Positions 311 to 57,438 of a DNA stretch of 64,000 nucleotides are shown piece by piece. Position 1 is the first letter of the stretch, and each line of letters opens with the position of its first letter. The stretch spans positions 1-64,000 of IMG/VR virus record IMGVR_UViG_3300028177_000001, one strand, 5' to 3'. The notes under the pieces were generated by a model. That model saw only the letters and a program-made list of their open reading frames with translations, searched no databases and was not told the origin of the DNA. The position numbers were made by a program, and so were the translations under genes.

Positions 311-1180
311 TTAGACCAGGCCTCTCCGGGCCAGGACACGGCGAATGGCCAGACGTTGCTCTACGTGTGGCGCATTCCAGTTGACGACCCCCTGGTTTAG
401 CATCGCTGCTGCCTCGGGAGCTTCGGGGCCGTTGATGACAGGCATCTGCTTGCGGTCGGGGGCCCAGCTGGGAACAGAAGTATTCATCTGACCCGCATTC
501 CGAGCCACCTGCTGGATGCCTTCCTCCACAGACCCAAAGGACTTCTCCAGGATCGACTGCACCTTCTCCGGGGACATGGTCCCGTACTTGTCGCTGGCCC
601 CATTCTGAACGTAGCTCTGCAGTTCCGAGGCTACCTTGCGTGGGTTTAGGTCCGCGATGGAGCCAGAGCCGGGGTTGCCGTTGCGCACGCCGAACTTGCC
701 CTTGGACACCAGGTTCAACACCTTGATCAGCTCCTTCCCGTTCACACCGGCGCGGTAGCCCCCGACCTTCCCCTTAGAACCTGCTGCCAGAACCGTAGCA
801 GCCCAGCGATGGTGCCCGTCCAGGATGTGCCCGTCCTTTGAGATCATGGCGCCGAGGTCTCCCCCGACCTTTCCGGTGTCCAGCATCTTGAGAGCAAGCT
901 TCAGTGCAGAGGGAAGTCGGATCGTAGTCTGCGAAGGCTTCAACGAAGCGGCGGACCAGGACCCTCGCGACACAGGGATCTTGTCGTCGTTGGCGTTGCC
1001 GTCGTCCAGTCCCGAAGTGGAGATGAACTCGGCGATGGAGGGGTCAACCGCGTCCAGTCTCCCAGCCTGCTGGACCTGGTCCTCAATCTGCTCTTCTGAG
1101 TATTCCGCCCGACGCAGAAGATGCTCCCGCAAGTCGGGGTGCTGCTTCGCCAAACGTGTCAGAAGCCTACGGGTGTTCAT
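311..1180 (-). CDS. ParB/Srx-like domain protein with peptide tags, probable virion-internal protein
   Basis: ILDGHHRWAA motif typical of ParB-N/Srx; N-terminal LLTRLAKQHPDLREHLL and C-terminal IRRVLARRGLV tags. Confidence 0.7.
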   Translation of the reverse strand: MNTRRLLTRLAKQHPDLREHLLRRAEYSEEQIEDQVQQAGRLDAVDPSIAEFISTSGLDDGNANDDKIPVSRGSWSAASLKPSQTTIRLPSALKLALKMLDTGKVGGDLGAMISKDGHILDGHHRWAATVLAAGSKGKVGGYRAGVNGKELIKVLNLVSKGKFGVRNGNPGSGSIADLNPRKVASELQSYVQNGASDKYGTMSPEKVQSILEKSFGSVEEGIQQVARNAGQMNTSVPSWAPDRKQMPVINGPEAPEAAAMLNQGVVNWNAPHVEQRLAIRRVLARRGLV

Positions 1181-1194
1181 GCTCGCTCCTGGTC

Positions 1195-4100
1195 TCAGCT
1201 GTCGGTCTCGGATGCGTCATCGCTGGGGAACGGAGCCAGAGTGACAGTCGGGCTGAGACCAGCCTTACTGTGTCCGCCCACCATGGGCTTCCCTTCCAGC
1301 CGGTAGCGGTCGGCGGCTGCCGTCCCCTCTCCGTAGCCTGTTGGGCTGATCTGTCCGTCCAGAGTGTATCCCTGACCCGCCAGAGGACCGTTGCCCATGA
1401 CGCCATTGGTCAGAATGACCATCTGAACCTCGTCCCCGTGAGAGCGGACGGAGGGAGCGCTGTAAGCCGACTCACTGTAGTTGCGGACCAGGAGGGCTCG
1501 ACCCACCAGGACACCGCCCTTGAGGACTGGCGCAGCCCCGTCCGGGAACGCGCCGCCTGCCCAGTCCAGCGGACCGCCTGAGGGGGTCGGGTCCAGCACG
1601 TAGGCGGAACCCCCGCCTCGGAACAGGCGGAAGTTCTTGGTGCCTGATGTCGTAGCGAGGGTCCAGGCCACGTACTTCAGCAGCCCGCCGTCGGACAAGC
1701 CGATCTGACCGCCTCCTTCGAGACGACCGAACTCCTGGGACCCCTGGACGGGAGCCTCCAGAGACGCAGTAGCACCTCCCCCCGCGCTAACACGCAAGGC
1801 CGAGAGTCCGTCCCGGAGAGGGTCCTCTCCCAGGAAGTCGGAGTCCTGCAGCAGAATCCCCAGCGGGAGCCTCTCTGTGAGACCCGCCATGCGCACGGGA
1901 GTGGTGCTGAAGGATCCCAGCTTCGCGTTCATCGGGTTGTCCGTGCCTCCCAGGAGGGCCGAACCTGTAAGGCTCGTGAGCCCGTACTGCGAGAGAACAC
2001 CCTGGGGAACCAGGTTGAACCCGAGGACCGCCCGCGTAGCACTCGGAGCCAGGGCGACCGAAGTCTGGTTCCCCTCTGCTCCGGGAAGCAAGGACACCAG
2101 GTGGCAGATGTTCGACCCGCTCCAGAACGCCGTGACCTGGGCCACGTTCCTGCAGAAGTCACTGGCGGCGATGAAGTCGGCCAGTGCCTTCGCAGCCAGC
2201 GAAATCGATGCTCCGGTGAAGCTTGTGTTAGACACCAACGCCAGGGACTGGGTGCCTCGCTTCAAGGTGATAGTCTCGCCAGCCGAGACCGCAGTCGTGG
2301 AGAGGGCAACGATGTCCAGAGTAGCCCGACCTGCGCTCTGGTCCTGAGCCTGAGTGAACACTCGGGGGGTGAACTGCCAGATGGGGTCGGAAGAGGTCGC
2401 CGCAATCCGGGTGGGGGCTACTCCGTCGGTGGTGATGCCTCCGATATCCAGAGGGGTTCCTGCGTAGACACGACCGCCGATCTTACCGGTGCCCAGGGTC
2501 GTGTAGAAGTCCATCGAGGCGAGGACCTCGAGCGACCGAGGGTTGGAGAGAGCCGGGACCTGGGAGTAGTTGTCTGTGCTGTCGTACTGCAGAATGGCTG
2601 TGGCCAGACTGGTAGAAGACGAAGCCGGCACCTGTCCGTAGCGGTTGCTGTAGTCCGACACCACCTTGGTGTTGCCGTCGCGAGTCATGTAGGGGTCGCC
2701 CTGGTAGACGGTCCGCTCGTATGCGACGTACAGCTGCTCGTTGTAGGGCAGAGGCAACGGCAGGATGCAAGACACCTGCGGAGCCAGAGCGGCGACCGAA
2801 GTCCCCAGTGTGGACGAACCGTCCGGGAGCGTCTTCCGCATCATGATGTAGTTGTTGAGGTTGATGAACCCTCGGCCGAAGCCGAAGACCACGCACTCCA
2901 CTACATATTCGAGATCATCGAACCCCTCTCCTGAGATGTACTGGCCAGAGAGTCGGACGTCAATGAGGTCGGACGGGATGACGTAGGTGTGGTCGTCGGC
3001 ATTCCCTGTGACATCCGACGCACCGCCCTTCGCGATGAAAAGGGTCTTCTTGTCCCTGTCTTCGCGGAGGAGGTTGATCGGGCGTCCCGAAGCGGTGCTC
3101 TTGGTGACCCTGTCGGGATCCCAAGCGCCCGAGCCCGAGAACTCCCGCAAGTCGTAGACACCGTAGAGACGAGCAATCCCGAGGAAGGGCGGGAGCTGGA
3201 TGCCCTTCAAGCCCTTGGGAGTGTCCGAAGAGATGACATTGACGTCGGTGTGGATACGAGCCTGGTACCCGACCGCCGCGCCCGCCAGCGTGAAGAACTC
3301 CCCGTAATCCCGAGCCGAGGTTGTCCCTGTCTGGAAGAAGATCGAGGGAACTACAGTGGTGCCGTTATCCGGCCCGCCAACCACGCGGAACACGTCATCC
3401 GTGTTGGTCTGGGAGTCCCCGAACAGGTGGTTGATTCCGTAGAACACCGGGCCTGTGGTGCCGGGGGTCTGACGGAAGGGGATGTCCTGTCGACCGAACC
3501 GAGGCATGAACTCCGGAGGGAATGCGTAGGCGTAGTCTGCAGTCGACTCGAAGATGCCCGCGCCGTCTACAGAGCCTCCGGAGAAAGCCCCCGCTGTGTA
3601 GGTGGCCGGAAAGAACCGGTTCGTGGCTCCCGTAGTGGCTTGGTAGCGGTACAGGGCAAGGTCGGTGCGCTGGAAGGGCCGAACCATCAAGGTCTTGGAC
3701 CCTGCGTCGACGAATACCTCAGCTTCGCGCCGGTACTCGCCTGCGTGGGAGCCGTCTCCGTAGAACGGGGCACGCGGAGCAGACAGTCCCAGGCTGGGCA
3801 AACGGTTCCAGGTCTGGATGTGCTGGAAGGGGAAGTAGAACTCCCCGGCTGCCACCCCAGCTTCTCCGGCGATGCTGGAGTCAAGAGCGGTGGGGGCTTC
3901 CCGAACGAGTTCTGCAGTGTCCACACTGGGCATTGCAACCCTGTGAATCTGCTTAGCGACCCGCGCAGTGCCTCCCCGGCTGGGGGAATACTGCACGGTA
4001 GTGTCCAGAATCGCCTGTGTGGGGATAGGCGAGACAGTCACCAAGCCGTCCCAGGGGTTGGTGGTCCCCCCCGAGACTGCCTGCAGGTCGGTCAAGACGA

Positions 4101-11129: not shown

Positions 11130-14100
11130 TCACTCCGAAGCCAGAAGAAGGATGCCACGGGTGCGGTAGACAGCTGCGCAAGTGTCGTTGCTCGTATCTA
11201 CGAACCGCACCGTGTTGTCGGCGTCCAGAATAGCGAAGCGGCTCACCACTACCAGGAGGACCTCATCCTTTCGGTACAGGACAGTGTCCGCAGAAGCGCG
11301 AGCCAGGAAGGGGAACCACACCTTGTGCGCGGACACTCCCGAGAGAGGCTGGGCCATCGCCGTGGGGCGATACGTGCTCGTGTCCGACACCTTGTATGCG
11401 ACCCGAAACTCTGAATCCACGTCCAGGCTTGAGAAGGCGAAGTCCTGGTTTCCATGAGCCGGAACCATCTGGTGCAAACTCAACAGGCCAGTAGCGGCGG
11501 AGAAGTCCCCGACTGAAATCCGGGCGCTTCCTGCAATGACCCATTCGGCTGTGAAGGGTGAAGTGCTCAGGTCGCCGTTCACGGCAATCTGATCCAGAGG
11601 GTTGGTGTACGGGAAGGGTGCGTCCACGCTTCCCGCGCTCATGGTACCGGTCCAGAGCTCCCTGGACATCACCAAGGGCTTGACGGTCAAAGTCGAGGGC
11701 AGCGGCACTGTGCCGGGGGCTCCCGCTTGCACACCCAGAGTCTGCGGGGCGTCGGTGCGGTAGTAGCAGGCAATCTGGTAACCCACTGCACCCCAGTTGG
11801 GCAAGGGGTCCTGAGCGAAGTAGTCAATGCTCACCAGGGTCTGACCCGCTCCGGAGAACGGAGACCCACCCTGCACCACCAGCAACCTCTGACTGGACCC
11901 GTAGGTCGTAGCAGCGGTGTTCACTGGGCGAGTAAGCGTGCTCACTGTATCGGTGACCGTCACTGTGGTAGTCGCCGACCCGTAGATGCGTCGAGGGAGA
12001 GTCACCAGCAAAGGAGAGTCACTCACCACAGTTTCGGTGATGGGAGTGCCCGAACCCGCACCAGAACCATCATTGGCGGCATACTCCACGCCGAGCTCTC
12101 GGAATCCAGTTCGGATCTGAGGCTGGAGCAAAACCTCCCAGTCGTCCGGTCGCTGTGCTGTGTCGTTTTCGAGCACGGGTCCGTTCCCGTACACTGCTGC
12201 AGCCGGGACTACCTCCACGCTCGGAGTGTCTGTGGTGCCCGACCCCGCAGGGTAGGTGATCTCGAGCTCGATGAAGATGCGTCGGGGAGAGTTGTTGTCC
12301 CCAGCGGCAGCCACTCCCACCAGGTCATAGGCAGCGACAGAGATGCCCCCGGTGGCCTGGACGTTGTTTCGCCCGAGAGTGATCTCTACAAGAGGGGTGC
12401 CAATCCCCTCCACCTTGTCGATCTGGCACGTCTTGCTCACGGATCCGGAGTAGTTGCCGTCGTCGTGGATGACGCGCAGGACATCTGTCACCTTGGTGCC
12501 CAGAGGCCACAAGTTCGAGACCCCGCCCCCGCCCGTGGGCGTGCCGGAGGGAGCGTTGGCCCATCCTCCGAGACCGGTGGCATCCAGAGCGTCCAGGTCA
12601 ATGCTGATGACATCCCCGGCTTCCCAGGTGGTGTAGCCTCCGGTGGACTTGGTCACGTACTTGCCAGGCTGCGCGCCGATCAAGTCCGTGGGCAGGATGG
12701 GGAAGATGCGCCGTTCGACCACAGGCCAGTCAGCGAACCGACGACGAACGTGATCGAAGTCGCCGATCTGGTCCCCTCGGTTCGTAGACCCGCTGGTGGG
12801 CGGCGTGCCCCCCTTGGACCCGGACCGGCCGATCTCATTACAGACCAGGAACTGGGTTCCCACGTCTCCGGTTCCGCCGCCGAGCTGGTTCTTGTCTGAT
12901 GCGTCAAGAGCCCAGGTGGCGAAGTTCCCGTCCATGAGCGCGGTCATCTGACGCTCAAGCTCGGCCTTCATGTCGATTCCGCCGGGAGACACCTGACGCC
13001 GAAGGTCCAGAAGATCCGCCACGAGGATCTGGTCGTGGTATCGTCCGTCCGGTCGGTCGGAGGTATTCGCCGGGATCGCTCCGACCAGAGGGTTAGTGAA
13101 CCCCCCGTGGGTCTGCGGAAGTGCGCCGTTGGTGTTGGTCAGAGGACTCCAGCCCGCGCCAGCGCCGCTGTTGTACGAGTCGTTGCGACGGAAAGCGAAG
13201 GCAATCGGGATGGCGTAGACGTAGCCGTCCACTGTGCCCAGGGCCGTTGCCGCCGTGGAGCTCCCGTCTCCTGCAATCCAGAGCCCGGCGTCTACCGTGT
13301 CGTATGCCACCGCGCTGGAGTTGCTTAGAACCGTCGCGCCGTCCGCCTTTACAAAGGGGTAGCCTGCCACAGCAGCGCTCTGCACTCCCTGAGCAGTGAC
13401 GTTCGAGTTGGAGAACCCGTCTTGCGTCTTGAAGTTCACCGCCTCCGACTGGCCCGTGGTGCGAATCCGATACTGGACCTGGACCCGCTTGGTGGACTCC
13501 GTGCCGATGGTGGGGTCCGCGATGTCGTCGGCGAGGTTCACTCCGGCAGGGGCTTGCACGTTTCCGTGGCGGTACAGTGTTGCCTGGGTCGGCTTGTTCC
13601 CTGTGTCCGAACCTCCCGAGAAGGTAGTCGGCCCTGCGCCCCCGTTGACCTGGATGCAACCACCCGTGCCCAGAGTGAGGGTCAGCGTGATTGCGTTGCC
13701 CGCGACCCCGGCCAGGGCGTCCGCAGCCTTGAGGTTCACCAGCGCGGAGTTCGAAACATCCACGGCAGCGGTGCAGATGCTCGTGAAGCTGTTGGTGCCC
13801 AGGTTGATGGCCGCCGCGATAGCAGCGGCGGTCGCATTGCCGTTCGCCCCGATCACGAACTCATCGGCTACAGCCGGTCCTGGAGAGACAGCCGTGAGGG
13901 GAGTGCCGTTGATGGTGATGATGTCGCCGGCAGTCACGTTTGCGTTCGTGATTATCTCAGTGGTGGCAGAAGCCCTGGGGCTGGTAGACACTACGCAACG
14001 CCAGACCTCGAGAAAGACGAAGTCGGTCCGCTTGACGTCGGGAGGGGATCCCCCGAACACTGGAGCCGCGTCGAGAGTGATGTCGCACTGCCCAGCGGTA

Positions 14101-14417
14101 GTAGTCGAGGTGTACTCGACCACCACGGGCATGTTCGAAACCAGAGCCACCCGCTTCTTCATCACGAAGGTGTTGACGGTAGCCGAAGCAGAGAAGTCGT
14201 TGTTCACCAGGGGGATCTGTCCCCTGAGCCACCCCGAGGGGAGCTGGTGGTCCTGGATCAGACGACGGATCTCTTTGCTGACCTCTTGCGAAAGGTTCAG
14301 CTCAGAGTCAAGGACAGGCTTCCCGCTTTGATAGACCGCCTCGTCCCACGAACGCTCGCCGGGAACGAGGTATCGCGAGACTGCCGTCCCCGGGAAATAC
14401 TTGTCTCGGATGGCCAT
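11130..14417 (-). CDS. large virion structural protein (DUF4815-like), paralogue of 1195..6561
   Basis: AVYQSGKPVLDSELN N-terminus; shared blocks FLEVW, DDIxDPxIG, RVQxQYRxR, TVDGYxYAIP, RPDGxxxDQI. Confidence 0.75.
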   Translation of the reverse strand: MAIRDKYFPGTAVSRYLVPGERSWDEAVYQSGKPVLDSELNLSQEVSKEIRRLIQDHQLPSGWLRGQIPLVNNDFSASATVNTFVMKKRVALVSNMPVVVEYTSTTTAGQCDITLDAAPVFGGSPPDVKRTDFVFLEVWRCVVSTSPRASATTEIITNANVTAGDIITINGTPLTAVSPGPAVADEFVIGANGNATAAAIAAAINLGTNSFTSICTAAVDVSNSALVNLKAADALAGVAGNAITLTLTLGTGGCIQVNGGAGPTTFSGGSDTGNKPTQATLYRHGNVQAPAGVNLADDIADPTIGTESTKRVQVQYRIRTTGQSEAVNFKTQDGFSNSNVTAQGVQSAAVAGYPFVKADGATVLSNSSAVAYDTVDAGLWIAGDGSSTAATALGTVDGYVYAIPIAFAFRRNDSYNSGAGAGWSPLTNTNGALPQTHGGFTNPLVGAIPANTSDRPDGRYHDQILVADLLDLRRQVSPGGIDMKAELERQMTALMDGNFATWALDASDKNQLGGGTGDVGTQFLVCNEIGRSGSKGGTPPTSGSTNRGDQIGDFDHVRRRFADWPVVERRIFPILPTDLIGAQPGKYVTKSTGGYTTWEAGDVISIDLDALDATGLGGWANAPSGTPTGGGGVSNLWPLGTKVTDVLRVIHDDGNYSGSVSKTCQIDKVEGIGTPLVEITLGRNNVQATGGISVAAYDLVGVAAAGDNNSPRRIFIELEITYPAGSGTTDTPSVEVVPAAAVYGNGPVLENDTAQRPDDWEVLLQPQIRTGFRELGVEYAANDGSGAGSGTPITETVVSDSPLLVTLPRRIYGSATTTVTVTDTVSTLTRPVNTAATTYGSSQRLLVVQGGSPFSGAGQTLVSIDYFAQDPLPNWGAVGYQIACYYRTDAPQTLGVQAGAPGTVPLPSTLTVKPLVMSRELWTGTMSAGSVDAPFPYTNPLDQIAVNGDLSTSPFTAEWVIAGSARISVGDFSAATGLLSLHQMVPAHGNQDFAFSSLDVDSEFRVAYKVSDTSTYRPTAMAQPLSGVSAHKVWFPFLARASADTVLYRKDEVLLVVVSRFAILDADNTVRFVDTSNDTCAAVYRTRGILLLASE

Positions 14418-14679: not shown

Positions 14680-14680
14680 G

Positions 14681-19015: not shown

Positions 19016-19389
19016 GCTGCCATCCTCATGTTGCAGGCCGAGGCCTCTTCCTGGGGGAGGATCCAGAACTCCGCGATGGAGCGAGCCCCCTCCAGGGAGA
19101 ACAGCTCAGCCTGCTCAGCGGAATAACACACGCGGAGCACCCGCCCGACGGAGCCCTGCTCGGCCACGATGGCATAGATGCCCGAGGCAGACTCCTGTCC
19201 CGGCTGGAGGGTGTCTCCAGTGCGGAACTTGAAGCGCTCAATGCGCCCAGTCCCCCCGAGCCCCTTCTGATTCACCCAGTCCAGGACCGAGCGAGAGAAG
19301 GAGAAGCGGGCGAGCTTGCCGTCGGGGCGGATGAGGCCCCAGATGCGGTCGGAGGCGCAACCCCCGCTGGAACAACTACGCTGCGACAC
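19012..19389 (-). CDS. hypothetical protein
   Basis: Start reassigned to the GTG at 19389 after GGAGG; the longer ORF-track start overlaps the true upstream gene. Confidence 0.55.
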   Translation of the reverse strand: MSQRSCSSGGCASDRIWGLIRPDGKLARFSFSRSVLDWVNQKGLGGTGRIERFKFRTGDTLQPGQESASGIYAIVAEQGSVGRVLRVCYSAEQAELFSLEGARSIAEFWILPQEEASACNMRMAA

Positions 19390-20184: not shown

Positions 20185-21510
20185 TCAAAGGTAGAACTGT
20201 TCGGACACGTCTTCGGCTGAAATCGCTTGTGGGACCTTCGCACCGAGTCTGTCTACGTCGACCTCGTAGCTCTGACCTGTAAGCACCGAGGCCATCCTGC
20301 GCTCGAGCTTCAAGATCGACGGTGCGAGGCGAACCTGGTCGCCACTGATGCCTGCGGTGCCCAGGGGTCCGCCCGTTGCCCCCAGTACAGTGTCCAGACG
20401 GTAGGTGCCCGCGTTGACGCCCGAGGCGATCGTGATTGTGGTATCAACCGCGAGCAACCCCCAGTCACGAGTTGTATCCTCGACTACGTTGTCGGAGAGG
20501 GCCCGGAGTGTGCCGGAGCCCCCAGAGGACACAGTGTACGCAACAGGGGTGGCCGAGGCTCCGCTCAACAGGGCTCGTGTGCTTAGAACCCTGTATGTGC
20601 CCGCGTTGGCCCCTGCCAGAACACGCAGCGCAGCGCCGACCCGGATTGAAGCAAACGAGAAGGAGGTGTCCGAGAACAGGGTCCTGTCAGTCAGGGTGGA
20701 GCCCGCCGACCCCACGATGGACTTTGACCCCAGGCACCACTTGCGGAGGTCCGCATAGTAGTAGGGCTCGATGTCCCAGGAGTTCGGAGCGGCTCCGTCG
20801 TCTGCGAGCTTTGCGAAGGCGTCCTTGAAGAGGTAGCTGTACGCATACAGGACGTGTGCAGGCTTCAGTGCTGCCAGAACCAGCGCCGCATTGTCCTGCG
20901 TCACAAACGGGTCCGTTGGGAAGCCTCCAGAGGCAGTCTCGATGAACACATCGATTGCGAACTGGTCCTCAATCGTGTACGCCCCGTCCGGGTCACGGGG
21001 CGGGGTCTCCAGATACCGCTCCACCACAGTGGCAATGAAGGTGGAGTCCAGAGCCTCGAGACCGCCCTCCAGCGAAGCCTTAGTGGCCCCCTGCATGAGC
21101 AGGAGAACCATCTTGTGGAGGAACTCCCGGTAGTTCAGGTCCCCCGAGATCTGGGGGATGCCCGTCTTGTCCGTGGCCCCTGGGAACACGAAGCTGCCAA
21201 TCATCTCCCAGAGGAAGTCCGTGCGGGTGAAGTCCCAGGCCGAGTCCTTGTAGATCTCGGCAGTGTTGATTTGGATGTCCGCCAGCTGTTCGGCCATGGC
21301 CTGGAACTGAAGGGAGTACCACGGACCGTTCGTGGATGCGACATAGTTCGACGGGAGGAGACCCCGGAACGCCGACATGATGGAGTCGACGAGGGCTCGC
21401 TTTTCATCCAGGTAGTCCTGGCCAGGACTCACCGGGTTGGGAGCGGGGTTCTGCGTCAGCGAGAACGGGATGAGGCTACTGACCTTCAGGGCGTCGTCGT
21501 CGTGGGCCAT
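20185..21510 (-). CDS. baseplate wedge-like virion protein
   Basis: N-terminal LLPSNY...QFQAMAEQLA...FLWEMIG...YREFL...QGAT pattern resembles baseplate wedge/gpI-like proteins; beta-rich C-terminus. Confidence 0.55.
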   Translation of the reverse strand: MAHDDDALKVSSLIPFSLTQNPAPNPVSPGQDYLDEKRALVDSIMSAFRGLLPSNYVASTNGPWYSLQFQAMAEQLADIQINTAEIYKDSAWDFTRTDFLWEMIGSFVFPGATDKTGIPQISGDLNYREFLHKMVLLLMQGATKASLEGGLEALDSTFIATVVERYLETPPRDPDGAYTIEDQFAIDVFIETASGGFPTDPFVTQDNAALVLAALKPAHVLYAYSYLFKDAFAKLADDGAAPNSWDIEPYYYADLRKWCLGSKSIVGSAGSTLTDRTLFSDTSFSFASIRVGAALRVLAGANAGTYRVLSTRALLSGASATPVAYTVSSGGSGTLRALSDNVVEDTTRDWGLLAVDTTITIASGVNAGTYRLDTVLGATGGPLGTAGISGDQVRLAPSILKLERRMASVLTGQSYEVDVDRLGAKVPQAISAEDVSEQFYL

Positions 21511-22204: not shown

Positions 22205-22219
22205 ATAGTCTCGATACCG
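22205..22219 (-). promoter_or_regulatory. putative late promoter variant (CGGTAT-N5-CTAT)
   Basis: Near-match to the consensus, 26 nt upstream of the start. Confidence 0.55.
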
Positions 22220-40407: not shown

Positions 40408-40847
40408 CAGGCATCGTTCCGACGGTAGCGTTCTACAACGCAGCTGGTCATAGTGCGGCGCTGCAAGGTGACTGTGGAGTCGTTCACGGGGTGGCCGCGC
40501 TCCTCGCCGGGCTCGGCCAGGGTTCGGGGCTGGATGTCTGACCTGGAGTCCGGGGTGTTCATCTCGAACTTGCCGATGTCTCGGCCCTCGCCTCCGGGCG
40601 TCGCCGAACCAGGCAGAGGCAACGCCGAGTCAGGCTCTCGGTCCAGGTTCGAGGGCAAGCCCAGACTGGAGTCCTCGTTCACCAGTGTCTTGACTCCGAA
40701 CTCGGGCTCCGAGAAAGAGCCTGTGCGACTCTCCAGGAGCTCCAGGAGCTCGGGGTCCACCCTTTGATGCTTGCGGCTGGGAGAGACGAAGATGTCGCGG
40801 GCGGCGCTGAACGCACGGGCGACCCGGTCAGAAGAAGGGGTGTGCAT
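40407..40847 (-). CDS. tagged hypothetical protein (PSSDRVARAF)
   Basis: ATG at 40847, 2 nt after the upstream stop; TGATG overlap downstream. Confidence 0.65.
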   Translation of the reverse strand: MHTPSSDRVARAFSAARDIFVSPSRKHQRVDPELLELLESRTGSFSEPEFGVKTLVNEDSSLGLPSNLDREPDSALPLPGSATPGGEGRDIGKFEMNTPDSRSDIQPRTLAEPGEERGHPVNDSTVTLQRRTMTSCVVERYRRNDA

Positions 40848-42542: not shown

Positions 42543-42557
42543 ATAGGCCCTGTACCG
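42543..42557 (-). promoter_or_regulatory. putative late promoter variant CGGTAC-N5-CTAT
   Basis: Heads the 42502-to-37304 tagged-protein operon. Confidence 0.55.
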
Positions 42558-45911: not shown

Positions 45912-46199
45912 ATGAACAAGCGCATCGCACAGAAGATCGCAAAGGCATACAACCCGGCGTCTCCGCCCAGCCCTCGGGTCGCTGCCGCCTTCCGTCGTCT
46001 GAAGCTTCCCTTCCCCGAGGCAACGGCCATTCGCGGAGAGAGCCGACTGGTGGTCATGCTGGACGAGGCTCCGGGTCTCGTCCCAGACTACAGTGGCATG
46101 GGAGTCGCTGCCCTTACGCAAGCCTGCAAGGACCGAGGACTGACGGGCTACTCCCAGCTCCGAAAGGCTGGTCTGGTCAAGCTCCTCCGGGGGGAGTAG
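45912..46199 (+). CDS. small protein with Rho-N/HeH-like C-terminal motif
   Basis: LTQACKDRGLTGYSQLRKAGLVKLL. Confidence 0.7.
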   Translation: MNKRIAQKIAKAYNPASPPSPRVAAAFRRLKLPFPEATAIRGESRLVVMLDEAPGLVPDYSGMGVAALTQACKDRGLTGYSQLRKAGLVKLLRGE

Positions 46200-47278: not shown

Positions 47279-47893
47279 TCAGGCCGGGTAGATCATGAGG
47301 GTTCCCGGGTCGTACCAGGAACCGTACAGGCCGTGCCTGTCCATGTACTTCTTGAGCTTGGGATCGAACTCGTCGGGGTAGCCGGACCGCTGGTAGTTGG
47401 CGAGCCCCTCCTCTCCGAAGGAAGTCCAGATGCCACCGTAGCCAGAGCCGAACGCTTCAGTGGTGTCGATCCGGGCTGATCGAGGGAACATCCGTCGAAG
47501 GGCGCTGATGTGCTTCTTCATGGACGAGGAAGCAGAGACGCTGCCCATACGAAACGTCTCCCTCTCGCGGTCGCCCGGAGTCCTCTTCCAAGGCTGGGCC
47601 TCGGAGTTCCAGGCCTGAATATCAAACCTGTACCTGCCCTCAAGCCAGGACCCGTCCCACCAGTCTACAGCCACGATCATTCCGGGCTCAGTGCGTTCTT
47701 CTTCCGAGTGGCCTGCCACGGGCTTGGTCAGTCTGGGGATGAGCTTGATGACCCGACCCTTGTAGTCGCCGCCGGCATCCCCGTCTACGTGGACAAACTG
47801 GCCGAGGCGGTAGCTCCTCGCAGGTCGAACCAAACGTCGGACGCTCTCCTTGGAGAGACCCTCTTCGGCCAGGATGTTGCGAAGCTTGCCCAT
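47279..47893 (-). CDS. tagged two-domain hypothetical protein (MGKLRNILAEEGL)
   Basis: TGATG overlap with the upstream gene. Confidence 0.7.
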   Translation of the reverse strand: MGKLRNILAEEGLSKESVRRLVRPARSYRLGQFVHVDGDAGGDYKGRVIKLIPRLTKPVAGHSEEERTEPGMIVAVDWWDGSWLEGRYRFDIQAWNSEAQPWKRTPGDRERETFRMGSVSASSSMKKHISALRRMFPRSARIDTTEAFGSGYGGIWTSFGEEGLANYQRSGYPDEFDPKLKKYMDRHGLYGSWYDPGTLMIYPA

Positions 47894-48675
47894 CAGATGT
47901 TGCATTCCTTCGTCTGGCGGTCGATGTACCGCTTGAGGGTCATCAGCTCCTTCCGGGTCCGGGCGGGATCCAGGACCAAGCGCGGGTTCTTCTCCATCCG
48001 TTGGAGTGGGGCACGCAGGTGCTTGCGGACTTCCTTGGCCATGCTGCTGTTGGGCAAAGCATCAACGATAGAGAAGAGGTCAGCGAGGGTTCCCCGCAGA
48101 CCGGGGGCGTCCTCCTGATCGAGTTCTATCATGGCCTCCAAGAGTCCCTTAGAGATCTCCCTCAGCTGCGGCACACACTTGGTGATCCCCTGGGTGCCCC
48201 AGCCGAAGCCGACGGTCCGATCCAAACCCACAGGATACTGACCGAGAGGGCGAGTCTTCATTGCGTCCTTGTAGCCCCGTGAGCGAACCCGCTTCGCAAG
48301 TTCCATGTCCAGAAGCCGCTGGGCGACATTCTCTTCGAGGTCGAACTTGTCAAACCGTGCGCCGTCCACGCGACGACGATCAGGACCGTCGTCGGTCAGA
48401 GCACCCCAGCGGCGCTGGTAGCTCCAGAGACCGTCCGGCTGCTCGGTGATCAACCCCTCGTAGAACTTGCTGTTGTTCTTGGCCGCGTCGATCTTGTAGG
48501 TCATGAACCCACGCTTCTCGCGGAGGTCCTTCGGGGTGACCAGGACTGGACGGTGCGCCGTCTTCACCCGCTTCAACCCGGCGAGAATCGCACGGCGTTC
48601 GGTCGAACCCTTCGGCAGCGTCGACGCAATCCGGATCAGGTTTGAGCAGTCGGAAGCAGTGAGGGTGCGAGGCAT
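47893..48675 (-). CDS. tagged protein with WGR-like domain
   Basis: N-terminal ASDCSNLIRIASTLPKGSTERRAILAGLK; NSKFYEG...QRRWGA resembles WGR; AGGAG RBS; motif variant at 48702-48716. Confidence 0.7.
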   Translation of the reverse strand: MPRTLTASDCSNLIRIASTLPKGSTERRAILAGLKRVKTAHRPVLVTPKDLREKRGFMTYKIDAAKNNSKFYEGLITEQPDGLWSYQRRWGALTDDGPDRRRVDGARFDKFDLEENVAQRLLDMELAKRVRSRGYKDAMKTRPLGQYPVGLDRTVGFGWGTQGITKCVPQLREISKGLLEAMIELDQEDAPGLRGTLADLFSIVDALPNSSMAKEVRKHLRAPLQRMEKNPRLVLDPARTRKELMTLKRYIDRQTKECNI

Positions 48676-48724
48676 GAGATTCTCCTATGTAGGGGAACCT
48701 GGGATATACTCTCTACCGGGACCC

Positions 48725-51271: not shown

Positions 51272-51718
51272 TCACCCGGAAAACATCGTTCCGGTGAACC
51301 ACCACCCAGCCTTCCCAGCCTCCTGCTCGAAGTACCGTTGGATCTGGGTGTGGAGCTTGGCCGGGGAGCTGTCCTTTTTCACGAAAGCTGCGAGTTGATT
51401 CAGAAACAGTTTTCCGGGGTCAACTTGGTCCCCCTTGTAGTGGAAGGTGGGTAGACTCGAGGCAGGCCAACCTGACAAACGGACCTTCACCCTTGCACCG
51501 TTCGACATACCCTTTTCGGTAAGAACCGCCTTGTCGTCTCCTACGCCCTTGGGACCCTTCTTGACAAGAGTCAACCTACCTCCCGAGAGAGTGATTGCAT
51601 CCGCCCGAGAGGACTTCAGGCCCGCCAGGATGGCCTTGCGCTCGTCCGAGCCCTTCTCCAGGGAGTGGGCCAGCTTGATGAGGGAAGAGCGATCAGAAGC
51701 CGTGAGAGACTTGGGCAT
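51272..51718 (-). CDS. tagged hypothetical protein (ASDRSSLIKLAHSLEKGSDERKAILAGLK)
   Basis: GGAG RBS; preceded by the tandem promoter array. Confidence 0.75.
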   Translation of the reverse strand: MPKSLTASDRSSLIKLAHSLEKGSDERKAILAGLKSSRADAITLSGGRLTLVKKGPKGVGDDKAVLTEKGMSNGARVKVRLSGWPASSLPTFHYKGDQVDPGKLFLNQLAAFVKKDSSPAKLHTQIQRYFEQEAGKAGWWFTGTMFSG

Positions 51719-51743: not shown

Positions 51744-51814
51744 GTAGCTCTACCGTGAGATAGTAGCTCTACCGTGGGATAGTAGCTCTACCGTGAGATA
51801 GTAGCTCTACCGTG
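51744..51814. repeat. 19-bp tandem repeat x4 (GTAGCTCTACCGTG-RGATA) = tandem late-promoter motifs
   Basis: Cores at 51744, 51763, 51782 and 51801; on the minus strand three read CGGTAG-AGCTA-CTAT. Confidence 0.9.
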
Positions 51815-52163: not shown

Positions 52164-52781
52164 CTACGGGAGAGGCGTGTTGGTTCTCTCGGCCATCTGT
52201 GTGAGGTCACCGATAATCTCGGTGACCATACTCCCGACCATATCCCCCACATGGTTGGACGGCAGGAGCTTCTCAAACCCGTGCAGCTTCCGCGCCTTGT
52301 CGATAGTCACGTGCACTCGTAGTCCCAGGTCCTGGATAAAAGCCTGAGACTTCGGGGGGAGCTTCCAGAAATCTCGACCCCAGTCGTTGTGTGCAGAATT
52401 CTTCAGGCCAGCCAAGATGGCCTTCCTCTCCTCGCTGCCCTTCTCCAGGGAGGAGGCCAGTCGGATCAAAGCCGAGCGATCAGAAGCGGCCAGGCGGGCG
52501 AAGCCTCCAGGCTTCCATGCGTCCGCGACGGGGTACTTCTTGCGAGGGTCGTAGAGCTCGATGGTGGTCACCGGACCGACCGAGACCCCCTTGCCAGAGA
52601 CCAGCTTCTGCGCTTCCCGAGGGTCCAGGTAGGTCTTCCCCCGTGTACCCATGGAAAGGTCCTCGTTCACCGGGAGTTCGAGCTTCCAGCTACGCTGGTG
52701 CTCACCCATGCCAATGATGGGCTGGTAGATAGAAACTACGGTGACGGTTTCGCCGGGGGCCAGCTGGATCTTGGGGGGCAT
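52164..52781 (-). CDS. two-domain protein with internal tag (ASDRSALIRLASSLEKGSEERKAILAGLK)
   Basis: GAGGA RBS; late motif at 52809-52823. Confidence 0.75.
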   Translation of the reverse strand: MPPKIQLAPGETVTVVSIYQPIIGMGEHQRSWKLELPVNEDLSMGTRGKTYLDPREAQKLVSGKGVSVGPVTTIELYDPRKKYPVADAWKPGGFARLAASDRSALIRLASSLEKGSEERKAILAGLKNSAHNDWGRDFWKLPPKSQAFIQDLGLRVHVTIDKARKLHGFEKLLPSNHVGDMVGSMVTEIIGDLTQMAERTNTPLP

Positions 52782-52808: not shown

Positions 52809-52823
52809 ATAGTAAACCTACCG
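52809..52823 (-). promoter_or_regulatory. putative late promoter CGGTAG-N5-CTAT
   Basis: Exact consensus match. Confidence 0.6.
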
Positions 52824-53547: not shown

Positions 53548-53562
53548 ATAGCGACACTACCG
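53548..53562 (-). promoter_or_regulatory. putative late promoter CGGTAG-N5-CTAT
   Basis: Exact consensus match. Confidence 0.6.
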
Positions 53563-53576
53563 TCCGTCCGAGGAAC

Positions 53577-55295: not shown

Positions 55296-55337
55296 ATCCT
55301 CTACCTACCCTCGGGGTAGACTTCAACAGGAGGCTAA

Positions 55338-55529
55338 ATGGCATTCACCAAGACGAGTATCGCAGTGGTTCCCCCAGTGGTGGTTGAGGGTGTGCCTAAG
55401 CCTTCTCAGCCCCAGGTTTCCGACGCGCCCTTGAAAACGGAGCGGGAGGTCGGAGAGGAACGAGACGGGCGGTTCTGGGACGGCGAGAAGTGGGTCACTC
55501 GCGAAGAGTGGCTGAAGACTCAGGACTAA
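55338..55529 (+). CDS. small hypothetical protein
   Basis: AGGAGG RBS; FWDGEKWV motif. Confidence 0.6.
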   Translation: MAFTKTSIAVVPPVVVEGVPKPSQPQVSDAPLKTEREVGEERDGRFWDGEKWVTREEWLKTQD

Positions 55530-56260
55530 GTTCCGCGCATAGCGTTTAGGCGAGCCATCTCTCGGGGGTTTCGCTGAAGCTTCCGCCACGCTGCAGACAT
55601 CTCGCCGTACCAGGCGTCAGCGTAGACCTCTCCCAGGATGGTTGTCTTTTCCCGCAGGTTCCATCGCCCATACTCCCCACCTGTGTACAGGCCCGTGCGG
55701 AGTGCTTCGCGAAACTGTTCCCAGAGCTTCTCCGCCCGGCCTGAGAGCGACCACTCCCAGTTCATGGACATGTCCCCCGCAGCTGTCTGGAGGAAGCTAT
55801 CGAAGTCTTCAGCCTTACGCTTGGGGTCCCGCACATACCAGTCCGCGATGTCGGAGCCTTCCCCTCGGACGGACTTGTTCAACGCATCAACCAGCTTATC
55901 CCAGAGCTTGTTGATGTCGGGTCCCCGCTTAGGCACGTTGCGTGTTAGGCCGGGAGTGACCTCGCGAGGCAAGCCTGTCACACGCGCCCGGTACTTGTCC
56001 TTCAGGACACGCAGGTACTTGTCGGGCACCTGCATCTCTTCGCGGAGATACTGCCCTGAAGCGACACCCGGCTTGACCCCCATCTCCTCCCGAAGGAACT
56101 TCGAGAACATCACCGTCTTGATGACGAACTTCTTGCCGCCCTCAGTGTGGTAGGTCTCCGCTGCAGAGGCGACCATCTTCTTCAGGATCTGGCGCTCCTT
56201 GCTCTCGGCGGGAAGGGAGCTGGCGAGCCTGAGCAGGGCGGGAGAGACGTGGTGCGGCAC
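55526..56260 (-). CDS. tagged hypothetical protein (ALLRLASSLPAESKERQIL)
   Basis: N-terminal variant of tag A. Confidence 0.7.
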   Translation of the reverse strand: MPHHVSPALLRLASSLPAESKERQILKKMVASAAETYHTEGGKKFVIKTVMFSKFLREEMGVKPGVASGQYLREEMQVPDKYLRVLKDKYRARVTGLPREVTPGLTRNVPKRGPDINKLWDKLVDALNKSVRGEGSDIADWYVRDPKRKAEDFDSFLQTAAGDMSMNWEWSLSGRAEKLWEQFREALRTGLYTGGEYGRWNLREKTTILGEVYADAWYGEMSAAWRKLQRNPREMARLNAMRGT

Positions 56261-56268
56261 AAGATTTC

Positions 56269-56775
56269 CTACGGGATTACGAGTACAGCCACTACAGCAC
56301 CGACCAGCAATCCGCCGGTGATGCCCCAGGCTGTGAAGCTATTGCGACGAGCTCGCTGCGCGTTGTTCTCGGCGATTAGAGCTCGGGTTTCCAGGGTCTG
56401 AACCTGGCCGGTGAGATCTTGCACCAGGAGCTCGTCCTCGCCGAACTGATCCGAGCAGGTCTGCAGTGCGGTGTACGTGCGGTCTTGCCATTCCAGGGTC
56501 GACTCAACACACTGGTCCAGCGCGGGCTGGCACACGTTGAGTTTCTTGGCCTGGACGATAGCAGACCTGTAGTGCTTGTCTGGCAGAAGCCAGTACTTCG
56601 AGGGCACCTGGTACAGAACCGAATCCACCGTGAAAGTGGAGCCCTCCGGAACCAGCAAGATCTCCTCGGCTGCCTCAACCACAGTCTCTGCGGTCTCTAC
56701 TGCAGGCTCGGCAGAGGTCTCGGAGGGGGCGGGCTCTTCAGCCCATGCAACGGAAAGCAAGAGTGCGAGCATCAC
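56269..56775 (-). CDS. exported protein with signal peptide, coiled coil and C-terminal TM helix
   Basis: MMLALLLSVAWA|EE; coiled coil; C-terminal WGITGGLLVGAVVAVLV. Confidence 0.65.
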   Translation of the reverse strand: MMLALLLSVAWAEEPAPSETSAEPAVETAETVVEAAEEILLVPEGSTFTVDSVLYQVPSKYWLLPDKHYRSAIVQAKKLNVCQPALDQCVESTLEWQDRTYTALQTCSDQFGEDELLVQDLTGQVQTLETRALIAENNAQRARRNSFTAWGITGGLLVGAVVAVLVIP

Positions 56776-57113
56776 GAGCCCCCTCCGAAGAGGTCTTCAC
56801 CCTCAGACTTGAGGACCTCGTCGGTTGCCTTTTCAACCTCGTCCTCTGCGGCTGCCATCTCCAGCATTGCCTCCTCGTGGTCAGCTACAATCTCGGCGGC
56901 TGAGGAAGCGGTGTCGACCTGAGCCTTCTCCACCGTCTTTGAGGAAGCGTTCCTACGACGTGCCGCCTCGGCCGCTGCTGCGACTGCCGCAGCCCCAACC
57001 CCTGCAGTCACAGTCGTGTCTCCCGTCATCAGGTAGACCGCGACCGCCACCCCGATCAGCAGAACAGCGACACCCAGACCCACCCACAGGGTCTTGTTGC
57101 TACTCCAGTCCAC
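56772..57113 (-). CDS. membrane protein with N-terminal TM helix and coiled coil
   Basis: LWVGLGVAVLLIGVAVAVYL, then an A/E-rich helix; overlaps the next gene. Confidence 0.65.
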   Translation of the reverse strand: MDWSSNKTLWVGLGVAVLLIGVAVAVYLMTGDTTVTAGVGAAAVAAAAEAARRRNASSKTVEKAQVDTASSAAEIVADHEEAMLEMAAAEDEVEKATDEVLKSEGEDLFGGGS

Positions 57114-57438
57114 GAGATACTTCCTTCTTCAACCAGGCGCTGGCGACCCGAGAGGGAGAGCAGGAACCGCGTCGTCCCTTGAGCATGCCCCGGAGTTCCT
57201 TCTTGATCTCGCGGGCTACCGGACCTTGCCACCGACCAGAGTTGGCGAGAAAGTACATCACGATGCTCTCGGCGTCGTCAGCCCCGTACATGTCGTCCAG
57301 GTAGTCCAGGGACGCCATCGCGACCACATACGGACGCGCCGACGCGCCGACCGGGTTCCAGTCGTCGATGATGTCGCGGGCAATAAGGTGTAGCTTCCGC
57401 ATCAGCATTCTCGGGTCAGTTGGCTGCCTGGATGACAC
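57100..57438 (-). CDS. phage hypothetical domain with C-terminal tag (SPSRVASAW)
   Basis: IARDIIDDW...PYVVAM...YGADDAESIVMYFLANSGRWQG...IKKELR, a pattern recalled from many phages; late motif at 57462-57476. Confidence 0.7.
   Translation of the reverse strand: MSSRQPTDPRMLMRKLHLIARDIIDDWNPVGASARPYVVAMASLDYLDDMYGADDAESIVMYFLANSGRWQGPVAREIKKELRGMLKGRRGSCSPSRVASAWLKKEVSRGLE

Follow-up and report, generated by a model that had tools for sequence, protein, structure and literature searches.

Why should 14 proteins, otherwise unrelated and encoded in the late region of a huge phage, share the same few short peptides? The window, meaning the whole 64,000-nucleotide stretch that was analysed (from IMG/VR record IMGVR_UViG_3300028177_000001), derives from a phage of roughly 350 kb whose capsid protein matches gp27 of phage G, a giant Bacillus phage. 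Three short helical tags on unrelated late proteins of this phage G relative are a real sequence feature, as is now confirmed. All 14 tagged proteins of the window are on the minus strand, four with tag A, about 6-7 with tag B (7-8 sites) and four with tag C. Tag A is a two-helix unit of ~33 residues, mostly exactly N-terminal, and tags B and C each consist of one amphipathic helix, 10-15 residues long. Overall, positions vary from N-terminus to C-terminus, internal, or both ends of one protein. The sites are these.

51614..51709, minus strand: tag A, N-terminal (residues 4-35), 148-aa protein 51272-51718; HMM 63 bits
48568..48666, minus strand: tag A, N-terminal (residues 4-36), 260-aa protein 47893-48675; HMM 65 bits
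52398..52493, minus strand: tag A, internal (residues 97-128), 205-aa protein 52164-52781; HMM 64 bits
56189..56239, minus strand: degenerate tag A (residues 8-24), 244-aa protein 55526-56260; HMM 16 bits, E 2e-4, six-frame window search
57118..57165, minus strand: tag B near the C-terminus, 112-aa protein 57100-57438; HMM 23 bits
41900..41947, minus strand: tag B, internal (residues 186-201), 550-aa protein 40850-42502, at the module 1/2 boundary; HMM 18 bits
40794..40844, minus strand: tag B, N-terminal (residues 2-18), 146-aa protein 40407-40847; HMM 21 bits
38669..38719, minus strand: tag B, copy 1 (residues 73-89), 406-aa SWIM protein 37715-38935; HMM 19 bits
37721..37771, minus strand: tag B, copy 2, C-terminal (residues 389-405), same SWIM protein; HMM 22 bits
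36203..36250, minus strand: tag B near the C-terminus (residues 305-320), 336-aa protein 36152-37162; HMM 19 bits
22128..22178, minus strand: tag B, N-terminal (residues 1-17), 214-aa protein 21534-22178; HMM 24 bits
47855..47887, minus strand: tag C, N-terminal (residues 7-17), 208-aa protein 47279-47905; HMM 18 bits
38935..38970, minus strand: tag C, extreme C-terminus, 491-aa GNAT protein 38932-40407; HMM 11 bits
30711..30746, minus strand: tag C, N-terminal (residues 2-13), 339-aa protein 29730-30749; HMM 15 bits
314..349, minus strand: tag C, extreme C-terminus, 289-aa protein 311-1180; HMM 12 bits

When residues were shuffled within each of the 55 window proteins, the expected pattern counts were 0 for tag A, 0.18 for tag B (0.02 for its strict form) and 0.003 for tag C, against 3, 7 and 4 observed, and in 2,000 shuffles the observed counts were never reached; the patterns were set post hoc on the same data, and independent confirmation comes from other contigs. 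An HMM for tag A, trained on 69 instances from related contigs, detects three copies at E about 1e-19 (gene starts 48675, 52781 and 51718) and the degenerate one, in the protein starting at 56260, at E 2e-4, all four as proposed in a first-pass annotation; a further degenerate copy, which had been placed at the N-terminus of the protein starting at 1180, escapes it. The proposed tag B sites are present throughout (proteins starting at 22178, 37162, 38935, twice, 40847, 42502 and 57438), with 4 bits as the top reversed decoy. For tag C, where the top decoy is 3.7 bits, the sites in the proteins starting at 30749, 40407 and 1180, the latter two C-terminal, hold up; the remaining one had been given a gene start of 47893, the true start being 47905. 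A single plus-strand pattern match, at 45975, falls in a frame whose coding signature is poor. Since tag A copies differ at synonymous codon positions, conservation is at the protein level and not that of a DNA repeat. The 148-aa tag A protein is identical to a protein on an IMG/VR contig.

A profile search in related contigs, suggested at first pass, finds tags A, B and C again: tag A at 47 loci on 29 viral contigs, tag B in 52 matches scoring over the best decoy, and tag C in further contigs. In metagenomes tag A occurs in 1,753 representative protein clusters (942 with E <= 1e-10) and mostly occupies residues 4-37, so that more than 1,700 unannotated protein clusters carry it. It does not occur among Pfam hits, in GenBank phages or in bacterial genomes, and none of the tags was found in cultured relatives. 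Bacterial matches to ERKAILAGL number 25; most represent a RecG/Mfd-type helicase motif, and in none does the first half of the tag precede it. The supposition that the tags are portable modules on non-homologous payloads is borne out by 56 tag A proteins falling into 43 payload clusters, with the tag 60-95% identical between copies and the payloads without detectable similarity. Tag A genes form tandem arrays with variable payloads and in 13 contigs come immediately after a sheath-like gene. At numerous phage loci tag B is present and tags A and C are absent.

The setting is one of virion morphogenesis. A sheath-like gene is followed by genes for a zinc-finger protein, tag A, a tag C-like protein, two small untagged products, tag B, tag C, a peptidase with tag B, a tag B-like protein, two untagged products, TerL (phrog_2, E 2.5e-22), two further products and the portal (phrog_16240, E 3e-31). 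Three genes later come a protein of 297 aa with a tag B at each end, one of 775 aa, one of 919 aa combining tag B with PolyA_pol/HAD_SAK_1/2H, and one of 2120 aa with three tag B copies. Some genes beyond, a prohead-protease homolog is followed by an acidic scaffold-like protein, then one of 224 aa, then the capsid protein (PDB 6WKK, E 3.6e-66), and after that the window. Among 86 genes of this contig 25 are tagged; the sheath, TerL, portal, capsid and baseplate proteins and the plus-strand genes among the 86 are all without a tag. The tagged genes lie in the morphogenesis region, among sheath, terminase, portal, capsid and baseplate genes, in keeping with the late role that had been claimed. 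The first-pass annotation had also noticed no tag on plus-strand replication genes, and had held that equal frequency there would count against its reading; of 14 plus-strand genes in the window none is tagged (Fisher p = 0.011).

A promoter-like motif, CGGTRG-N5-CTAT, which had been said to precede most tagged units, is present in 10 exact matches (0.15 expected) and in 16 with one mismatch. Without exception these lie on the minus strand, and for most of them the distance from motif end to the start codon downstream is 24-52 nt. Occurrences ahead of tagged genes, and two untagged neighbours, are as follows.

51760..51812, minus strand: promoter-like motif CGGTAGAGCTACTAT, exact, three tandem copies upstream of the tag A gene starting at 51718
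52809..52823, minus strand: promoter-like motif, 28 nt upstream of the tag A gene starting at 52781
57462..57476, minus strand: promoter-like motif, 24 nt upstream of the tag B gene starting at 57438
48704..48718, minus strand: promoter-like motif, one mismatch, 29 nt upstream of the tag A gene starting at 48675
42543..42557, minus strand: promoter-like motif, one mismatch, 41 nt upstream of the tag B gene starting at 42502
22205..22219, minus strand: promoter-like motif, one mismatch, 27 nt upstream of the tag B gene starting at 22178
20185..21510, minus strand: untagged neighbour, homolog of phage G baseplate protein gp189; tblastn E 3e-5 to gp189, E 1e-33 to LR745208
11130..14417, minus strand: untagged neighbour, tail-fibre-like, 1095 aa; tblastn to phage G gp211 and Tunturi_5 'tail fiber protein', both E 6e-11

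Phage G gp188-189 are reportedly baseplate proteins, with confirmation from the virion proteomics of that phage. The motif is upstream of tagged and structural-looking genes alike, for example at 14545 and 14665 ahead of the tail-fibre-like gene, and elsewhere in the genome it precedes the double-tag-B gene and an islet of PLD, CHAP, tag A and tag A genes. From the genes downstream of it, its activity would be late.

The presumed cargo varies, and comprises small proteins as well as multi-domain 'polyvalent' enzymes. The kinds comprise ADP-ribosyltransferases, HAD/2H/nucleotidyltransferase RNA-repair modules, GNAT, a BECR-like RNase, SWIM, a hydrophobic-helix module and a C39-like cysteine peptidase; among the domains are ART-PolyVal, DUF4258, HAD_SAK_1, 2H, InPase, GNAT, PolyA_pol and ADPrib_exo_Tox. 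The same domain vocabulary characterizes phage polyvalent proteins, which are predicted to be packaged and injected (PMC5512222). Early payload assignments fared unevenly. Pfam-type matches bear out HAD_SAK_1 in the 336-aa protein (E 2.9e-20; two HxT motifs, HITL and HLTL, read from the translation are 2H-like), SWIM in the 406-aa protein (E 2.4e-5) and GNAT in the 491-aa protein (E 3.4e-5). Matches are weak for WGR (the 260-aa tag A protein, E 0.004) and for the RNase-like DUF4258. The ParB-like call on the 289-aa protein, whose translation has a DGHHR motif, finds no Pfam ParB match, and for the Cys-His peptidase-like call the Foldseek match is not significant.

Next to the tags there is, as had been remarked, a box of small residues. 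After tag A come K (45%), K (60%), A/T/S/V (72%) and A/S/G (70%); before tag B stands [T/A][A/P]S, also written [K/R]-T-A-S. Such a box recurs in the acidic scaffold-like protein beside the capsid gene. On residue frequencies and three visual matches, K-K-[A/T]-[A/S] is a candidate cleavage site for a maturation protease. We rate at about even the chance that the tags are docking peptides which load proteins into the virion and are probably trimmed at the adjacent K-K-A-S box. In this phage G-like huge phage, they would bring unrelated proteins, during late assembly, to one shared partner encoded by the phage itself; the scaffold or core, or else the procapsid's inner surface, is the most likely candidate. 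The cargo would end up inside the virion for delivery with the DNA, and the maturation protease may free it from its tag at the small-residue box, much as the T4 maturation protease does. The modular packaging code originally envisaged is partly supported: portability, morphogenesis context, the promoter-like motif shared with structural-looking genes, avoidance of the plus-strand replication genes, polyvalent cargo and adjacent box all point its way. However, a docking motif fits better than a removable leader of the T4 type, because tags are also C-terminal and at both ends of one protein; location at both ends, or within five residues of the N-terminus, is unlike such leaders. Also counting against packaging, neither the T4 targeting sequence nor encapsulin loading peptides nor any PDB chain resembles the tags in sequence, and some tag A genes are outside the morphogenesis block, beside PLD and CHAP genes.

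The most conserved tagged protein, the C39-like peptidase (Pfam Peptidase_C39_2), is pertinent both to packaging and to its closest competitor. Its minimal form, catalytic domain plus C-terminal tag B, is kept in phages of 37-65% GC, which favors a phage-internal partner for the tag. The arrangement resembles prohead proteases with a C-terminal targeting propeptide, as proposed for that of SPN3US, and also the T4 capsid targeting sequence (PMC7411985). Against packaging, tags as modelled were detected in only 35 of 80 peptidase loci. It is possible, if doubtful, that the tags are instead leader-like recognition helices for this peptidase, which would cut at the box to release modules from polyproteins or activate effectors with no capsid-loading role, as double-glycine leaders are cut by the peptidase domains of bacteriocin exporters. 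The AlphaFold model of the peptidase (pLDDT 89.5) finds its best matches in the peptidase domains of PCAT1, LahT150 and ComA (E 4e-6 to 3e-5). Enzymes of that type recognise leaders that form amphipathic helices and have small residues after them, and the tags are amphipathic helices flanked by K-K-[A/T]-[A/S] or T-A-S boxes. The peptidase gene sits amid the tagged genes, and tags mark module boundaries in multi-domain proteins. In the 550-aa protein the ends of local alignments with 99 homologs cluster at residues 170-199, so placing tag B at a boundary of shuffling modules; in its AlphaFold model, residues 183-213 fall below pLDDT 50 and include a short helix (190-197). In each of the two AlphaFold models, tag B forms a short helix of pLDDT about 50, in a linker between domains of pLDDT >90. 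However, in the model the helix is not docked on the peptidase, and the hydrophobic spacing and G-G/A/S site of double-glycine leaders are not reproduced in the tags. Cuts at an extreme N-terminus, or at the peptidase's own end, would be pointless. Structural matches to the fold include phage cell-wall lysin domains and PeiR as well, so the peptidase may not process proteins at all, and a separate prohead-protease homolog exists. Processing of this kind is, in any case, compatible with packaging and not exclusive of it.

Docking to another phage hub, whether tail lumen, baseplate or a self-assembling ejection complex, or pairing of tag A with B or C to bundle effectors, is unlikely. The position of tag A genes directly after a sheath-like gene in those 13 contigs, the adjacency of the window's tagged genes to baseplate-like and tail-fibre-like genes, and bivalent proteins with tags at both ends are what would be expected. 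The module starting with tag B has two hydrophobic helices, read from the translation (helices throughout the region in the model), reminiscent of membrane-inserting ejection proteins. However, one orthologous peptidase has tag A where the others have tag B, at the same position, which suggests that the two are equivalent and not complementary. The many loci with tag B and neither A nor C also count against this reading, and no candidate hub was found.

It is typical of hub-binding motifs to be short helices, at termini or in linkers, of proteins that are unrelated, and the payloads resemble host-directed enzymes. Binding to a host hub after expression (chaperone, protease adaptor, clamp, ribosome or secretion route), with no packaging into virions, would also suit the tag A genes outside the structural block. 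Yet it is improbable given the GC range over which the peptidase keeps tag B, which probably means very different hosts, the absence of tag A from bacterial proteins and the lack of tags on plus-strand replication genes. Least credible is that the tags are inherited remnants, being ends of duplicated or recombining segments, or recombination linkers with no addressing function, for although they coincide with shuffled-module boundaries and tag A genes form tandem arrays, tag A stays similar where payloads do not, synonymous codon divergence shows purifying selection on the peptide, the clusters carrying it are so numerous, and minimal proteins exist that are an enzyme plus a tag or tags only, such as an 87-aa protein comprising two tags and nothing else.

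The recurrence of three short helical tags on otherwise unrelated minus-strand proteins, to which the first-pass annotation had drawn attention, is borne out by pattern searches together with profile models, and 14 proteins of the window are tagged:

Tag A (about 33 residues), minus-strand proteins starting at 51718, 48675 and 52781: pattern searches and profile models.
Tag A, weak copy, minus-strand protein starting at 56260: profile model.
Tag B, minus-strand proteins starting at 22178, 37162, 38935 (twice), 40847, 42502 and 57438: patterns and profiles.
Tag C, minus-strand proteins starting at 30749 and 47905, and the C-termini of the minus-strand 40407 and 1180 proteins: patterns and profiles.

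A degenerate tag A that had also been listed at the N-terminus of the 1180 protein was not detected. With residues permuted within the 55 window proteins as control, tag A was observed 3 times against 0 expected, tag B 7 times against 0.18 and tag C 4 times against 0.003. Origin of tag A as a DNA repeat is ruled out by synonymous codon differences among its copies, and what selection keeps is thus the peptide. The tags are indeed missing from plus-strand genes (14 of 40 minus-strand genes tagged versus 0 of 14; p = 0.011). A plus-strand match to the tag B pattern, SPPSPRVAAAF at 45975-45992 (+), is probably chance; in the ORF that contains it (45912-46199) GC by codon position is a poor fit to coding, and a frame with better coding character overlaps it. 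Identity of tag B with a twin-arginine export signal is ruled out, there being no hydrophobic region after the tag. Attention is drawn separately to a 166-residue helical protein, 19376-19876 (-), which ends ...KEVRRVAA, perhaps a tag B core truncated at the C-terminus, and is under the profile threshold.

The window is the first 64 kb, with GC of about 62%, of the 288-kb IMG/VR contig 3300028177_000001, and a 350-kb assembly of the same phage exists. The major capsid protein, encoded 3.5 kb past the window end, matches phage G gp27 (PDB 6WKK; E 3.6e-66), and the uncultured huge phages LR745208 and LR745206 are further relatives. As some open frames abut, stop-codon recoding was considered and rejected: all three stops end genes (27 TGA, 20 TAG, 7 TAA), so the standard code applies. 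The late region is one long minus-strand block that runs from about 112 kb down to position 1 of the contig, in this order:

First in the block (-): SNF2 helicase, zinc ribbon protein, 1,744-residue sheath-like protein.
Next (-): Ros/MucR zinc-finger protein.
Next (-): tag A protein, tag C-like protein, two small untagged genes, tag B protein, tag C protein.
Next (-): C39-like peptidase with tag B, tag B-like protein, two further genes.
Next (-): large terminase (phrog_2, E 2.5e-22), two genes, portal (phrog_16240, E 3e-31).
Next (-): three genes, helical protein of 297 residues that has tag B at each end, 775-residue protein.
Next (-): 919-residue protein with tag B, nucleotidyltransferase (PolyA_pol), HAD_SAK_1 and 2H.
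Next (-): 2,120-residue protein with three tag B copies.
Next (-), contig about 70.4-71.9 kb (L087:503-2008, a locus of this contig): 501-residue homolog of phage G gp19 (BLASTP 3e-19).
Next (-), contig about 69.3-70.4 kb (L087:2020-3138): scaffold-like protein of 372 residues, very acidic, its gene two upstream of that for the capsid protein.
Next (-): 224-residue protein, capsid protein, then the window.
In the window, 20185-21510 (-): homolog of phage G gp189.
In the window, 11130-14417 (-): protein resembling a tail-fibre protein.

In the phage G study gp19 is named a head maturation protease, and gp188-189 are reported as baseplate proteins confirmed by its virion proteomics. Tags are carried by 25 of the 86 late-region genes, and by none of the recognised shell, tail and packaging proteins among the 86. 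The 297-residue double-tag protein was considered as a gp19 homolog and rejected for lack of any similarity. Two resemblances may be recorded here: the 501-residue gp19 homolog has three RVA tripeptides (VRRVAAS, SRSRVAFEF, LVRVASS) that have the look of degenerate tag B cores, none above profile threshold, and in the 372-residue acidic protein the residues ILIRLAEDD are reminiscent of helix 1 of tag A.

A promoter-like motif, CGGTRG-N5-CTAT, has 10 exact matches (0.15 expected), all on the minus strand and mostly ending 24-52 nt ahead of a start codon. Six tagged genes lie behind it; six untagged genes, mostly structural-looking, are preceded by it too. It is also found ahead of the gene for the 297-residue double-tag protein and, elsewhere in the genome, ahead of a four-gene islet:

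L056:7953-10393 (+), a locus on contig 3300028177_000003: PLD-like nuclease, lysin with PG_binding and CHAP domains, and two tag A proteins, in that order.

The islet sits within a minus-strand nucleic-acid block (ligase, CCA-adding enzyme, NUDIX, RF-1 domain). At 51760-51812 (-), ahead of one small tag A gene, the promoter-like motif, as CGGTAGAGCTACTAT, stands in three direct tandem copies (19-bp period).

Profile searching beyond the window, which had been proposed as a check, finds all three tags again in related viral contigs. Tag A is present at 47 loci in 29 viral contigs, its start usually being 3 residues past the initiator Met, and often on tandem arrays of small genes, with occasional C-terminal or internal copies. 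When the tag A profile was run exhaustively against 1.84 billion representative proteins, 1,753 clusters reached E <= 1e-3, 942 of them E <= 1e-10, and the tag lay mostly at residues 4-37. In many of these proteins there are 2-4 copies, including copies at both ends, and one 87-residue protein consists of two tags and nothing else. The payloads are unrelated (56 tag A proteins give 43 payload clusters), and among the few with a Pfam match are an ADP-ribosyltransferase exoenzyme domain, pentapeptide repeats and a fusellovirus VP2-like DNA-binding domain. For tag B, whose consensus is [T/A/K][A/P]S[A/P/S]xRVAx[R/A][F/Y/W/H][A/L], there are 52 matches in related loci above the best reversed-sequence decoy, five of the copies occurring in one 1,519-residue protein. 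Tag C (LRxILAxEGL) is at N-termini in four other contigs.

Searches of 50,697 GenBank phage records gave no tag A, nor any cultured relative with tags, and none was found in bacterial genomes. A degenerate DNA pattern for ERKAILAGL picks out 25 bacterial loci, mostly a RecG/Mfd-type helicase motif; these are rejected as homologs since none has the first half of the tag. Identity of the tags with a known domain is likewise rejected, as there is no Pfam or PHROGs match, the tag A profile drew nothing but noise from PDB sequences, and the motifs were not found in the literature searched. In one contig (L026:4007-4108 region) tag A runs directly into tag C-like sequence (ERKAILAGLAAEGLLS), and tag B often has xEAGL right after it. 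Judged by these cases, the three tags may have in common the ending ...[I/L][L/A]x(E)[A/G]GL, and possibly their origin as well.

A 550-residue protein (40850-42502, minus strand) is built of three modules that shuffle. Its module 2 opens with tag B as a conserved beginning (RVAxRHLEAG..DWLxWxxQPF), and it is at tag B that alignment ends from 99 homologs cluster. Those homologs join the modules to nucleotidyltransferase, InPase, ChaC, superoxide dismutase, C39, GNAT and HAD_SAK_1 domains. Tag B is again a low-confidence linker helix in the AlphaFold model, and the C-terminal Cys-His module has no significant Foldseek match (best E 0.8). The protein at 36152-37162 has HAD_SAK_1 and two HxT motifs, and ART-PolyVal and DUF4258 are present in related loci. 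In the GNAT protein at 38932-40407 (-), a middle part of some 180 residues, extremely basic and rich in K/R, is followed by an acidic region and then the C-terminal tag C; by composition the middle looks like a nucleic-acid-binding or DNA-condensing segment.

The most conserved gene of the neighbourhood is that for the C39-like peptidase, with 444 homologs:

L004:14302-15252 (-), a locus on the same contig at about 97-98 kb: C39-like cysteine peptidase, also at 80 related viral loci (L089-L168).

In a broad group of huge phages it ranks among the best-conserved genes; the 80 loci span 31-65% GC, their contigs are as long as 618 kb, and identity is about 58%. In its AlphaFold model (pLDDT 89.5) the enzyme has a papain-like domain for which the top Foldseek matches are the double-glycine peptidase domains of PCAT1, LahT150 and ComA, with further resemblance to PeiR and phage lysin domains, so that its substrate might be either phage proteins or cell wall. 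The fold is that of papain-like C39 enzymes and the catalytic His is conserved, H104 being invariant. The Cys is less clear; that of QYxCM is in the consensus with less than 90% conservation in the alignment. The peptidase is free-standing, having only the tag and a variable C-terminal domain, with no ABC exporter fused or adjoining. In most of its lineages tag B is either straight after the catalytic domain or at the extreme C-terminus, and minimal forms are just the catalytic domain plus 12-15 C-terminal residues carrying the tag, e.g. IMASRIASTHLNREGL or VVASHQKVALRYLSR. In the model the tag is a short helix (pLDDT about 50), and the linker that holds it joins two domains predicted with confidence. 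One ortholog has tag A in place of tag B at the same position, which argues that the tags do equivalent jobs. Among GenBank phages the peptidase is found only in the uncultured LR745208, where the tags are degenerate. Conserved peptidase-terminase-portal synteny is rejected, since at BLAST level no more than about 8-16 of 78 loci show it.

Short helices lying in flexible stretches that can be at any position and in 1-5 copies, that are equivalent to one another and are conserved far beyond their payloads, suggest docking motifs for a common conserved partner. That the partner would be a phage-encoded assembly component, with incorporation into the virion, is argued by the placement and apparent co-regulation of tagged genes with morphogenesis genes, by a cargo vocabulary that is that of injected polyvalent proteins (PMC5512222) and by the fact that the peptidase keeps tag B in phages that differ widely in GC. 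Most simply the partner would be the procapsid core, tagged cargo would be taken into the virion, and the maturation protease would trim at a box of small residues next to the tag. Such a box is seen as K-K-[A/T]-[A/S] after tag A and as [K/R]-T-A-S ahead of tag B, and recurs in the acidic 372-residue scaffold-like protein (SKKASL, SKKAFM, PKKASV). We infer that it is a maturation cleavage site by analogy to T4, in which the targeting sequence is followed by the site at which the protease cuts the scaffold as well (PMC7411985). From the proposal that the tags are a packaging or maturation code, then, portability, late-gene placement, apparent co-regulation and polyvalent-type cargo stand, and the loading reading is to that extent partly supported, packaging and cleavage being proposals. 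The fullest form of it is that a phage G-like clade has a modular address code in which three interchangeable helical tags, at either end or between domains, load an open-ended and rapidly exchanged set of more than 1,700 protein clusters, tag-trimming enzymes included, into the capsid; it is put forward tentatively, with rather less than even confidence.

Alternatives partly merge with loading. The tags could be recognition signals for the C39-like peptidase, which has a fold akin to double-glycine peptidases; as the only maturation protease that enzyme is rejected, since the phage G gp19 homolog is encoded two genes ahead of the capsid gene and the fold is also lysin-like. The tags could also dock to the tail or ejection complex, a possibility that, like the preceding one, overlaps with loading. 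Binding to a host hub could be envisaged too, against which the retention of tag B in phages of such disparate GC speaks. A resemblance of tag A to the coat-binding helix-loop-helix of P22 scaffolding protein has no sequence support and serves as analogy only.

A close parallel is the capsid targeting sequence of T4 (on IPI-III and Alt, and removed by gp21), also a short peptide common to unrelated proteins. Tag A is mostly N-terminal on small hypervariable proteins of tandem arrays, and further likenesses are ADP-ribosyltransferases in the cargo, genes among late and structural ones, and a conserved short box beside the tag that recurs in a scaffold-like protein (PMC7411985). In contrast to the T4 sequence, tag A is roughly threefold its length and seems to comprise two helices, and the phage employs three tags, which are also C-terminal, internal, multi-copy or at both ends; there being no significant tag A match in GenBank phages, T4-like phages carry no tag A. 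Encapsulin and microcompartment peptides are short helices, at either terminus or in linkers, that send unrelated enzymes into a protein shell, in encapsulins one of HK97 fold. The capsid protein here, as a gp27 homolog, presumably has that fold too, and the tags are likewise short and helical, but there is no motif similarity and here a virus packages DNA. By analogy the arrangement would work like the T4 sequence and the encapsulin peptides, and by sequence is a member of neither; three tags, any position, several copies and scale set it apart from both.

In cargo the resemblance is to polyvalent proteins, for which Iyer et al. 2017 (PMC5512222) give ART-PolyVal, HAD_SAK_1, 2H, DUF4258/BECR-like, InPase, GNAT and nucleotidyltransferase domains, extensive domain shuffling, a peptidase, and genes beside virion genes. 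Here also several such effector domains are in one polypeptide encoded among virion and late genes. Polyvalent proteins are described there as anchored via MuF or portal fusions and processed by a zincin-like metallopeptidase, whereas no Pfam match to either anchor domain or to such a metallopeptidase was obtained in the proteins scanned, a C39-like cysteine peptidase being present instead, and many cargo units stand alone as small genes that carry a tag of their own. The passages of that paper drawn on make no mention of conserved inter-domain tags, and the word 'linker' is absent from its main text. What the arrangement adds to the polyvalent-protein theme is an address element that is conserved, and another kind of peptidase.

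Prohead proteases provide another parallel. HK97 gp4 has a C-terminal targeting propeptide. One is likewise proposed for SPN3US prohead protease gp245, comparable to the tag B tail of the minimal C39-like peptidase (PMC7411985). The enzyme here is however a cysteine and not a serine peptidase, with the gp19 head-protease homolog present separately, and its tail motif is common to many non-protease proteins. A classical double-glycine leader ends G-G, G-A or G-S with hydrophobic residues at -4, -7 and -12. Likeness to such leaders and their C39 exporter peptidases lies in a C39-fold peptidase beside proteins with amphipathic helical tags and small residues. Tag A has an invariant internal G, usually followed by S, and small residues after the tag, at a spacing that is not the classical one. 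Neither an ABC transporter nor a G-G site at a set distance is present, and the tags are not confined to N-termini.

Functional reading aside, tag A defines a sequence family, large, virus-specific and unannotated, for which a database entry is merited; the same goes for the C39-like peptidase, which could be used as a new marker gene for this huge-phage group. Were the tags signals for loading, sequence alone would suffice to list the proteins that uncultured huge phages inject, anti-defence and host-takeover enzymes included, and more than 1,700 hypothetical protein clusters would gain a location and a likely role. Fast effector exchange would be explained, any domain becoming cargo once fused to a 10-33-residue tag. 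Foreign proteins, too, could be loaded into large capsids by means of such small natural tags. In the fullest form of the reading, the arrangement would be a natural plug-and-play cargo-loading system for an HK97-fold shell, far larger and more flexible than the T4 internal-protein one.

Some neighbouring genes are of interest in other respects. Adjoining the topoisomerase II genes are an SLT transglycosylase with an N-terminal membrane helix, 23067-23663 (+), and a 156-residue protein, 23740-24210 (+), whose C-terminal half is a near-pure Asp/Glu/Ile repeat (DDDIDDEDDDID...). Twin-arginine export-type signals at the start of two phage proteins, 30833-31309 (-) in the window and L056:11896-12672 (-) on contig 3300028177_000003 (MERRTFLSLSACATVAALLPATAEA; MDTTRRGFLQLLGIGGAVAAV), suggest export of these proteins to the host periplasm.
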